Shown in pieces: positions 61,282 to 64,000 of a stretch of DNA of 64,000 nucleotides; position 1 is the first letter of the stretch; the number at the start of each line of letters is the position of its first letter. The notes under the pieces are model-generated. The model was not told the DNA's origin, did not search any database, and saw only the letters and a list, made by a program, of their open reading frames with translations. Location: assembly GCF_030028105.1 (NCBI RefSeq), contig NC_092379.1, positions 20,189,309-20,253,308 of the forward strand. Reading direction: 5' to 3'. The DNA is from Mobula birostris (lineage: Eukaryota). Position numbers and translations under genes: made by a program.

Positions 61282-61327
61282 ATGGGGGTCGTTCCTTATC
61301 TCTGTCTCCTCCTGTCTTGTCTGGCAG
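61282..61327 (+). CDS. IGHV: IgW-type VH leader exon (V1): [15 protein letters not shown](G)
   Basis: 46-nt hydrophobic leader exon, phase-1 GT donor at 61328, polypyrimidine/AG acceptor at 61435-61436. Confidence 0.92.
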
Positions 61328-61436
61328 GTGGGTGTCCCGCGGCTTGTCGCCCTCCCGGGACCGGCTGTTTCTCGGAGGCTTTGTGAACCTCTGCCCGTGG
61401 AACATTTTATTAATTTCTGCTCTTTTTTATTGACAG

Positions 61437-61780
61437 GCGTGCGGTCCGACATCGTGCTGACACAGCCCGGGTCAGCGGTGGTAAAGCCCGGGCAGTCCCA
61501 CAGACTGACCTGTGCGGTCAGTGGGTTCGACATCAGCAGCCGCTACATGTACTGGGTGAAACAGGTCCCCGGGAAAAAGATGGAGCGGTTGGTAACGTAT
61601 TATAGTGAAAGTTACAAGGATTACGCGCCTGGAGTCCAGAGCCGCTTCACCGCTTCCAAGGGCGGCAGCAACTTTTATCTGCAAATGAACAACCTGAGAC
61701 TGGACGACACGGCCACCTACTACTGTGTGAAAGGCTGCTATTACGACGAGTGGGGTACTATACAGAGTTACTATAGGTGG
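61437..61780 (+). CDS. IGHV: IgW-type VH exon (V1), open, apparently germline-joined to D sequence: [11 protein letters not shown]...LTC...W...YYC-VKGCYYDEWGTIQSYYRW
   Basis: Canonical FR1 Cys, FR2 Trp and DTATYYC; DIVLTQP...HRLTCAVSGF and WVKQVPGK resemble cartilaginous-fish IgW V; 18 codons after the second Cys before the heptamer. Confidence 0.9.
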
Positions 61781-61819
61781 CACAGTGTGAGAGATGGCGG
61801 CTCCCTCCATATACAAACC
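61781..61819 (+). other. 23-RSS after V1-D
   Basis: CACAGTG + 23-nt spacer + ATACAAACC; spacer identical to that of the D at 62867. Confidence 0.9.
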
Positions 61820-61885
61820 TACCGCACAAAACTCTTTAAATTGGGCTCTTCGGGCCGCTCCACCGGCCTTTATCCGAAAGTCAGC

Positions 61886-62016
61886 CTGACGAAGGGTCTC
61901 GGCCTGAAACATCGACTGTACCTCTTCCTAGAGATGCTGCCTGGCCTGCTGCGTTCACCAGCCACTTTGATGTGTGTTGCTTGAATTTCCAGCATCTGCA
62001 GAATTCCTGTTGTTTG
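61886..62016 (+). mobile_element. Penelope-type terminal-repeat insertion with hammerhead core, replacing the 5' half of V2
   Basis: CTGACGA-AGGGTCTCGGCCT-GAAAC-ATC-GACTG...GATGCTGCCTGGCCTGCTG...CAGCATCTGCAG; left junction shares GCCTGA with the native flank. Confidence 0.8.
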
Positions 62017-62180
62017 AGCTACTACATGAGCTGGGTGAAACAGGTCCCGGGAAAGGGCTGGAGTGGCTGGCGGCTATATCGGGTGGTGGTAGCAAGTATT
62101 ACGCGCCTGGAGTCCAGAGCCGGTTCACCGCTCCTAAGGAGAGCAGCAACTTTTATCTGCAAGTGAACAACCTGCGAGTG
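62017..62180 (+). pseudogene. IGHV: IgW-type V2 pseudogene (CDR1 to mid-FR3)
   Basis: [10 protein letters not shown], -1 frameshift (CCCGGG vs CCCCGGG), [25 protein letters not shown]...LQVNNLR; lacks DTAxYYC and V-RSS. Confidence 0.9.
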
Positions 62181-62195
62181 TCTGAGAGGGGCGGA

Positions 62196-62279
62196 GGTTA
62201 TCGTACGGCGGTGTATCACTGTGACTGTGCTATGGGATGGCACAGTGTGAAAGATGGCAGCTCCCTCCATACAAAAACC
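62196..62279 (+). other. IGHD: D segment ACTGTGCTATGGGATGG (62224-62240) with 5' 12-RSS and 3' 23-RSS
   Basis: GGTTATCGT-12-CACTGTG | D | CACAGTG-23-ACAAAAACC (consensus nonamer). Confidence 0.92.
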
Positions 62280-62402
62280 TACCGCACAAAACTCTTGGAA
62301 TTGGGCTTTTCGGACGCTTCCACCGGCCTTTACTCCGAAAGCCGGCCTGAGCTGAAGCCGCTAATCTCAACAGCGTCCGAGTCCGGCTCAGTGCTCAGGG
62401 CG

Positions 62403-62820
62403 ATGGGGGTCATTACTCACCTGTCTCCTCCTGTCTTGTCTGGCAGGTGGGTGTCCCGCGGCTTGTCGCCCTCCCGAGACCGGCTGTTTCTCGGAGGCTT
62501 TGTGAATCTCTGCCCGTGGAACATTTTATTAATTTCTGCTATTTTTTTTATTGATAGGCGTGCGGTCCGACATCGTGCTGACACAGCCCGAGTCAGCGGT
62601 AGCAAAGCCCGGAGACTCGCACAGACCGTCCTGTGCAGTCAGTGGGTTCGATATCAACAACTACTACATGAGCTGGGTGAAACAGGTCCCGGGAAAGGGC
62701 TGGGGTGGTTGGTTGCGTATAGAATAGAAACGTACATGTACTTCGCGCCTGGAGTCCAGAGCCGATTCACCGCTTCCAAGGAGAGCAGCAGCTTTTATCT
62801 GCAAATGAGCAACCTGAGAG
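62403..62820 (+). pseudogene. IGHV: IgW-type V3 pseudogene (leader 62403-62446, V exon from 62558)
   Basis: Leader is 44 nt (2-nt deletion); same -1 FR2 frameshift and same FR3 truncation as V2. Confidence 0.9.
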
Positions 62821-62838
62821 GGTTGTGAGAGGGGCAGA

Positions 62839-62919
62839 GGTTATCGTACGGCGGTGTATCACTGTGACTATACTGGGTGGCACAGTGTGAGAGATGGCGG
62901 CTCCCTCCATACACAAACC
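62839..62919 (+). other. IGHD: D segment ACTATACTGGGTGG (62867-62880) with 5' 12-RSS and 3' 23-RSS
   Basis: GGTTATCGT-12-CACTGTG | D | CACAGTG-23-ACACAAACC. Confidence 0.92.
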
Positions 62920-63254
62920 TACCGCAACAAAACACCTTAAATCGGGCTCTTCGGTCGTTTCCACCGGCCTTTACCCCGGGATCCGTGGATATAAATCAGA
63001 CCCCGAGTGGATAATCTGGGAGTGGGTACAAGTTCCACTGGAGATGTGTCCGGAAGGGAACGGGACCACCGAGGAGGAGCTGTCAGTGGAAGCCCAGTGA
63101 AAGGTCCCGCTGGGTTATATCACCTCCACTTCAGGACTGGGATGGCAGAGATTGAGACCCGCTGTGTGGGACACCCGGACACAGGGGGAGGTTTTAATAA
63201 ATCCGCTGGCCGGTTCTGGGATCCACTGGATTTCAGGCTGGATTTGATGAAGAC

Positions 63255-63282
63255 GGTTTGTGACGTGTGGTGAAGCACTGTG
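63255..63282 (+). other. 12-RSS preceding the (D)J segment
   Basis: GGTTTGTGA + 12-nt spacer CGTGTGGTGAAG + CACTGTG. Confidence 0.8.
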
Positions 63283-63349
63283 TCTGGCCTATCGAACTGT
63301 GACAATTATATGTACTGCGGCGGAGGAACCTCGCTGACAGTGACTTCAG
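63283..63349 (+). CDS. IGHJ: (D-)JH segment SGLSNCDNYMYCGGGTSLTVTS with phase-1 splice donor
   Basis: xGxGT...LTVTS J motif with Cys at the Trp position; G|GTAAG donor at 63350; 48-nt J core 63302-63349. Confidence 0.85.
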
Positions 63350-64000
63350 GTAAGACCAATTTCTCAATTGTATCTTCACGCACTAGTATTTTATTTATTT
63401 ACCGTTTGGGCGAATTCGGTGATTCGCCTGAAATCAGTGAGATATTTAGAGCAAGTACATGAATCTCCCCGAACCGGCGGGTTTCTCTAGAGCCCAGTAA
63501 CAGTACAAGGGTACATACCCCACCCACCAGTGACCTGTCCACAGACCGGGAACAGGCTCAGGGGAATGGGGTCGGATCTGGTCACCAGACTGTGCCTTGA
63601 CACCGGCCGATTGTGCTGAGTTCAAGTCTGGCTTGTGATCCTCAGCACCAACTGAAGCCACGTTCAGGGGCTGAGCTTTCAGTGCAGTTGAACTTGTTCC
63701 CTGTCAGTGACAACAATGGATTTGTTCAGTGTCAAATTATTGGGATCGGGTTTTACTGTCGGCTGCTTTCATGTTGAAGGTGATGGGATTAAGACATAAT
63801 CTGAGGGAATGGTGTACACATGTATGATCTGGTTGATGGCTCAATATCCCCAGGGTACAGGTGGGTGTCAGTCCCATCATGTAATGTCCGGCGTGAGGTC
63901 CGTCCCGGGATACAGCAAAAGTATCGGCGATAACCCAGGATTAATTGATGGGATTAAAGTTTTAGTTTTATTCCCTGATGGGTGAGGAGGTGGGGTGCGG

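Follow-up and report, generated by a model that had tools for sequence, protein, structure and literature searches.

We have asked how a heavy-chain V gene of Mobula birostris comes to carry 54 nt of coding sequence behind the conserved cysteine of its third framework region (FR3) and still to end in an intact recombination signal sequence (RSS). That is, of what is this extension made, could lymphocytes still recombine the gene, which agent built the join, and is it inherited? The gene lies in the window, the whole stretch of 64,000 nt that we have analysed (contig NC_092379.1, positions 20,189,309 to 20,253,308), and its features given below are on the plus strand. We are very confident of the following reading, drawn from the DNA: a germline join appears to have fused an IgM-type V to three or more D1 copies, of which the last has kept its 23-RSS uncut, and a D2-J join lies downstream.

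The gene, here called V1, begins with a leader exon at 61282–61327 (ATG at 61282), upstream of which stands a promoter of the family type (TATTTAAA at -96); the 260 nt upstream of V1 are conserved in the alignment with other clusters. The leader intron (61328–61436, GT..AG) is read from the sequence and from intron-removal joints at 61327/61437, which occur in RNA runs only; since these joints appear in X1 and X2 only, we take these two runs to be RNA. The V exon (61437–61726) keeps an open frame in translation from FR1 to the FR3 cysteine, whose codon TGT occupies 61724–61726, and a PDB sequence search identifies its product as VH-type. In FR2 (61570–61590) V1 reads GKKMERL, while the family reads GKGLEWL, as does the paralog P (L035; C12:20116940-20118180, minus strand), which lies inverted 133 kb upstream of the window cluster. 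Directly behind the cysteine comes the joined region (61727–61780), defined by its sequence, by D1 k-mers and by colinearity with P. It continues the frame of the V exon for 18 codons, VKGCYYDEWGTIQSYYRW, with the CDR3 start VKGCYYDEWGTIQSYY (VKGCYYDE...). Direct reading confirms both the coordinates and the count of 54 in-frame nt after YYC that a sequence-only reading of this DNA had given.

For comparison, our search of the same contig gave about 45 related V genes, spread from 18.4 to 24.3 Mb, of which we have inspected about 40. At least 14 are unjoined (L003, L007, L020, L023, L022 and nine more). They end 6–8 nt after the cysteine (for example GCGAGAGA), next to a V-type 23-RSS; roughly 8 nt had been quoted for an unjoined VH, against the 54 found here. 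An unjoined V family that naturally carries a long end has been considered and rejected, as 0 of the 14 unjoined genes has more than 8 nt after the cysteine. In the canonical split cluster (L003, L007, L020, L023), the V with its 23-RSS is followed by ~390 nt, D1, ~360 nt, D2, ~370 nt and J. The canonical D1 is ACTATACTGGGTGG with its variants, flanked by a 5′ 12-RSS and a 3′ 23-RSS; the canonical D2 has a 5′ 12-RSS and a 3′ signal that is best read as a 12-RSS. As a separate observation, the unjoined open V genes L020/L010 and L023/L014 (C12:22077309-22077836, 22786121-22786648) have SGSERECLA in FR2 where SGKGLEWLA is otherwise read; this is reminiscent of the "KERE" hallmark of camelid VHH, with a Cys at the Trp47 position.

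The signal that closes V1 (61781–61819) consists of the heptamer CACAGTG (61781–61787), a 23-nt spacer (61788–61810) and the nonamer ATACAAACC (61811–61819). Against the consensus, the heptamer matches at 7/7 positions and the nonamer at 7/9 with the AAA core, and the spacer has the length of 23 nt. Its spacer is identical to that of the RSS (62888–62910) behind the D1 at 62867–62880, and is unlike the spacer of V-type signals. The ~80-nt flank 3′ of the V1 RSS shows 90–95% identity to the canonical D1 3′ flanks, and alignments trace the D1 3′ flank through 61820–61865, up to the junction with the next unit. Since spacer and flank both match those of D1, the RSS of V1 is a D1 signal, and the earlier description of it as D-type holds. 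The V-type RSS and the 390-nt V-D1 intergenic region are missing at V1. Downstream, three 12-RSS partners stand in deletional orientation to the 23-RSS, at 62196, 62839 and 63255.

Within the joined region, 21 of the 54 nt fall in exact 6-mers shared with five D1 variants, where shuffling predicts 2.9 (p ~0.001). The V-derived end amounts to about GTGAAAG (~7 bases). The D1-derived pieces are TGCTAT, the 9-mer ACTATACAG preceded by GT, and a terminal ACTATA..GGTGG; the pieces are trimmed, and unrelated, N/P-like bases stand between them. The terminal piece abuts the heptamer with an untrimmed 3′ end, which is expected since the 3′ signal of this D has never been cut. Both ACTATA pieces start exactly at the D1 5′ end, and the preceding GT and T are palindromic to that end (GT/AC, T/A). 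These palindromes match P-like remnants of hairpin opening, which is suggestive but not proof. Taken together, the pieces support a structure in which three or more D1 copies, separated by N/P-like bases, would be fused to a V end of about 7 bases. The proposals that the junction holds several D pieces with non-templated-looking bases, and that its end resembles the D at 62867, are both supported, the terminal piece being D1-derived.

Behind V1 follow two units, each composed of a dead V and a D1. In unit 2, a SINE-like high-copy insertion (61866–62019), recognised by a DNA-run depth in the millions and by the broken V alignment, has replaced the 5′ half of the V; the remaining fragment (62020–62195, CDR1 to FR3) is frameshifted and fused to the D1 5′ flank. 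The D1 of this unit (62196–62279) has a 12-RSS (62196–62223) that is the same as the canonical one, a coding part at 62224–62240 and a 23-RSS at 62241–62279. In unit 3, the dead V (62403–62838) retains leader, intron and V to FR3 and is fused 45 nt upstream of D1; it lacks a promoter, and has frameshifts in the leader and FR2 as well as stops. Its D1 (62839–62919) is made up of a 12-RSS (62839–62866), coding part (62867–62880) and 23-RSS (62881–62919). Hence the two D segments which had been called free are not free-standing, each being the 3′ end of a dead V copy. The repeat unit is a promoterless broken V, the last 45 bases 5′ of D1, D1 with its 23-RSS, and a flank of ~75 bases. The junction between units, where the D1 flank passes into the V 5′UTR, is identical after V1, after unit 2 and in P, so that a tandem array starts with V1. 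Identity to V1 is 87% for the dead V copies and 94% for P; the array thus predates the split of the paralogs.

We have also considered these units as the ancestral arrangement, with the canonical V-D1 intergenic region being V-derived. This has been rejected: only the last 45 nt before D1 are shared by the units and the canonical intergenic region, so the FR3/D1-flank fusion is derived. An RSS-like motif was searched for at the fusion point and none convincing was found there; the FR3/D1-flank deletion and the tandem-duplication junctions look non-RAG. A different likeness concerns the D1 5′ signal: spacer and heptamer of the 12-RSS (ACGGCGGTGTATCACTGTG) match the end of V FR3 (ACGGCCACCTATTACTGTG, ...TAxYYC) at 14 of 19 positions, as seen in the window at 62205–62223 and 62848–62866 and in all canonical D1 segments. 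This hints that the D1 5′ signal may have been derived from a V 3′ end.

Beyond the array lie the D1-D2 intergenic region (62920–63254, homologous to the canonical clusters) and a D2-type 12-RSS (63255–63282; nonamer 63255–63, spacer 63264–75, heptamer 63276–82). This signal leads directly into a germline D2-J join, SGLSNCDNYMYCGGGTSLTVTS, at 63283–63349, which comprises 22 codons plus 1 base with a splice donor at 63350 and contains the DJ motif SGLSNCDNYMYC; the window cluster is without separate D2 and J. The DJ is in the same frame as the V1 coding end. The Trp of the J motif WGxG is replaced by Cys (63316–63321), and two Cys in the DJ are kept in the V1 cluster and in P, with their positions shifted. 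Loose ends of RNA reads show splicing from 63349 to the first C exon. The C-domain exons lie 7–15 kb downstream, and the last one bears a mu-type secretory tailpiece; its best solved relatives are the IgM and IgA heavy constants (residues 3–129). Since an IgM-type mini-cluster is defined by C exons that close with a mu tailpiece within ~15–20 kb of the V-(D)-J, the cluster is of this type, and the assumption of IgW in the sequence-only reading does not stand, given the mu-like tailpiece. The order of the cluster is therefore VD(D)-23RSS, two dead-V/D1 units, 12-RSS and germline D2-J join; since the V1 VD join and the D2-J join behind a 12-RSS belong to the same cluster, it can be classed as a "VD-DJ" mini-cluster.

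Two further observations concern constant regions. At L031 8070-8240 (C12:20260069-20260239), there are six copies of a 27-nt unit, each comprising the splice acceptor and 18 nt from the start of the first C exon; other clusters have one to three. All copies are in frame, so that use of upstream acceptors would insert 9-residue PKLSSPVT-like repeats between J and C1. At L034 2045-3340 (C12:20264044-20265339), the intron after the first C exon holds a 432-codon ORF that by eye is LINE reverse transcriptase-like, and the C-domain-like exons after J are five rather than four.

Partial joining is not confined to this cluster. About half of the ~40 sampled IgM-type clusters are partly or fully joined: ~17 have a V-D(D) join that keeps the D2 3′ signal, one has this signal damaged, one is a full VDJ, and two, the window cluster and P, are joined to D1. 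A near-identical V-D-D joined set (L024-L030, L018 and L058; C12 18.46–19.76 Mb plus two small contigs) shares the junction GCGAGAGGGTGGGAG and the D2 3′ signal; the V exons of L018 and L024, which we have translated, are frameshifted. This set resembles a block of joined pseudogene clusters that has been amplified recently. In L021 (C12:20611467-20612066, minus), VDJ is fully joined, the CDR3 TGTGCGAGGGCTGGGGCGGAGG is very short and the V is frameshifted; the cluster is dead.

We turn to whether V1 is a live gene. From its anatomy, we consider it slightly better than an even chance that present-day lymphocytes use the V1 23-RSS. A good RSS with compatible 12-RSS partners, reading frames uninterrupted throughout V, DJ and the first C exon, a conserved promoter and transcription all point in this direction. 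As to transcription, the runs X1 and X2 give zero-mismatch contigs over the dead-V/D1 units, which means that transcription takes place from the cluster in its unrearranged state. If one deletional V(D)J event joined 61781 to 63282, the product would be an in-frame heavy chain, with a predicted CDR3 of at least about 29 residues including three extra Cys. A protein search with the V1 product gave no hit in a large protein collection, from which proteins of this animal seem to be absent. A rearranged V1 transcript or an excision product was not seen in RNA mapping at 90% likeness, which is swamped by cross-mapping Ig V genes and in which read depth is unusable for ranking expression. The V-to-J joints from 61727 to ~63314 in this mapping come from other clusters and carry no information on V1.

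Alternatively, the join may be germline and real in a cluster that is a decaying relic, with its RSS unused and no functional heavy chain made. This is a possibility to be taken seriously, though one that we do not favour. It would fit the loss of the FR2 hallmark residues and of the J Trp, the dN/dS of 0.55 between V1 and P, which implies only weak constraint on V1, and the many neighbouring joined clusters that are frameshifted pseudogenes (L018, L021, L024); in the literature, the joined H-chain genes of the horned shark show little adult expression. On the other hand, neither paralog, at ~6% divergence, shows damage to its promoter, leader, splice sites, V frame, RSS, DJ frame or first C exon; the adjacent dead V copies are frameshifted, unlike V1, and the cluster is transcribed. 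GKKMERL in FR2 and the Trp-to-Cys change in J both fall on light-chain-contact positions; they could mean decay, or they could be a move towards a light-chain-independent domain.

As for the agent, it is highly probable that RAG with N/P addition made the join, and the V(D)J recombinase in germ cells would be the likely author of the V-D1(-D1) joins. As D1 has a 5′ 12-RSS and a 3′ 23-RSS, joins of V to D1 and of D1 to D1 obey the 12/23 rule. The extra D1 copies would have been drawn from the tandem dead-V/D1 array, of which two units remain downstream. Further evidence comes from another cluster, L005 (C12:21846885-21850421, minus; V at 21848385-21848921), in which D2 and the D1-D2 intergenic region stand inverted behind a V-D1 join. 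Where the inverted part ends, on its far side, the heptamer of a D1 23-RSS exactly abuts the D2 3′ heptamer (CACTGTG/CACGGTG). By this architecture, L005 is an inversional D1×D2 recombination with its signal joint retained in inherited DNA; from the heptamer-to-heptamer joint it follows that the D2 3′ signal behaves as a 12-RSS, and the retained signal joint indicates RAG activity in the germ line. The attribution of such joins to RAG, cited in the sequence-only reading, receives indirect support for V1 from L005, and the literature agrees with it.

Could the extension be the work of processes other than RAG, with D1-like motifs copied onto the V end through unequal crossing-over, gene conversion or slippage? 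The cluster has clearly been through non-RAG events, among them a tandem V/D1 duplication with non-RSS junctions and an FR3-to-D1-flank fusion 45 nt upstream of D1. However, V is cut off ~7 nt behind the Cys, at the place expected of RAG; the V-type RSS and the 390-nt intergenic region are gone; the D1 pieces are trimmed, with unrelated bases between them; the last D1 has an untouched 3′ end and RSS; and the L005 signal joint shows germ-line recombinase activity on this gene family. We therefore regard a non-RAG origin as improbable.

That the assembly has taken up, at this junction, a somatic rearrangement from a lymphocyte or a chimeric read can be put aside as very improbable, since P, 6% diverged, shares the junction, since it is present in four RNA samples and a DNA sample, and since V-D without J is not a usual lymphocyte intermediate according to the literature. 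In fact, P and V1 share both ends of the joined region colinearly (GTGAAAGGCTGCTATTACGA... and ...TATACAGAGTTAC..TAGG), and two diverged paralogs cannot both inherit a lymphocyte rearrangement, so the V1 junction is very probably germline. All 12 words sampled from the 163-base junction plus RSS are found in two RNA runs, and half of them in two further RNA runs and in each of four DNA runs of one other sample, although the RNA and DNA samples carrying these words possibly all come from one animal. In a related species, a contig corresponding to 61776–61910 spans the final coding bases and the RSS and reaches into the SINE, with 5 differences; the arrangement just downstream of the join thus predates the species split. 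The claim of a germline join, made at first from the letters only, is supported by the paralog as well as by these four RNA samples and one DNA sample.

The comparison with P also bears on the history of the join. Between P and the window cluster, identity reaches 94% for V and 96% for flank and intron. In the shared joined region 10 of 48 nt differ, against ~6% in V; the differences gather in the middle (61745–61760), where a 12-nt patch differs at ~8 positions with no change in length. Micro-conversion and selection are candidates for this divergence. The joined region of P is longer, 83 nt, with D1 k-mer enrichment at p < 1e-4, and it ends in GGGATGG; the D1 variant with this 3′ end is present, unjoined, in unit 2 of the window. 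The flank of the P RSS carries the signature TTGGAATTGGG in common with unit 2. P is without the SINE and without the dead V of unit 2. The one dead V left in P corresponds to that of unit 3, with 93% identity, and behind it the D1 12-RSS sits directly on the shared DJ core (AACTGTGACAAT.ATAT...), the D1-D2 intergenic region being gone.

The simplest reading of these features, tentative and in our view rather doubtful, is that P was joined further after the duplication; the window cluster and P may then be two frozen stages of an ongoing germline process. The VD of P would have taken in at least one more D1 unit, losing the SINE and the dead V, and its last D1 unit would also have been joined to the DJ; flank identities of 85–88% leave the orthology behind this staging unsettled. 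If true, the germ-cell recombinase would have repeatedly consumed tandem dead-V/D1 "cartridges" in this lineage, giving an ever longer, Cys-bearing, hard-wired CDR3 that is kept open by selection and finished somatically.

In cattle, the ultralong CDR-H3 owes its length to one very long D that is used somatically. The likeness to V1, a germline-encoded long CDR3 with Cys, is an analogy only, as the length arises here from a germline concatenation of short Ds. Closer systems are found in cartilaginous fish, where germline VD-J, VD-DJ, VDD and VDJ joins are well known and are attributed to RAG in germ cells (PMC5192425, PMC4279169, PMC2193156). As in the partially joined IgH clusters of the horned shark (Kokubu/Litman 1988, as cited in PMC2193156) and of other cartilaginous fish, V is fused to D in inherited DNA, a downstream RSS is kept, and split homologues exist in the genome. 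Unlike those shark genes, which join D1 plus D2, V1 has at least three copies of one D, D1, from a dead-V/D1 array; two units of this array remain between VD and DJ; and the hard-wired CDR3 is long, 18 codons plus 11–12 from the DJ. The nurse shark IgM1gj, a fully germline-joined VDJ IgM expressed in neonates (PMC4279169, PMC5192425), likewise has an IgM CDR3 fixed in the germline, but it is fully joined, needs no recombination and its expression has been shown, whereas V1 needs one join and its protein is predicted only. The NS4 genes of the nurse shark (Lee et al. 2000, PMC2193156) likewise form a family in which joined members adjoin split ones, from which repeated germ-cell joining can be inferred; they are light-chain genes whose VJ join retains no RSS, while here a heavy chain is partially joined and the RSS is retained.

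In nature, it is chiefly from germline-joined Ig genes that the V(D)J recombinase is known to be capable of acting in germ cells and of reshaping antigen-receptor loci over evolution. The VD-DJ cluster type is already in reviews, and joined clusters are common in this genome; the window cluster is a clean, well-resolved multi-D1 concatenation that obeys the 12/23 rule, and it leaves the established picture unchanged. The noteworthy part is the concatenation of D1 copies from a dead-V/D1 array, together with P and the signal joint as evidence for repeated germline recombination. The V1 cluster, P, which is seemingly one or two joins further, and the L005 signal joint could serve to date and order germline recombination in a ray.
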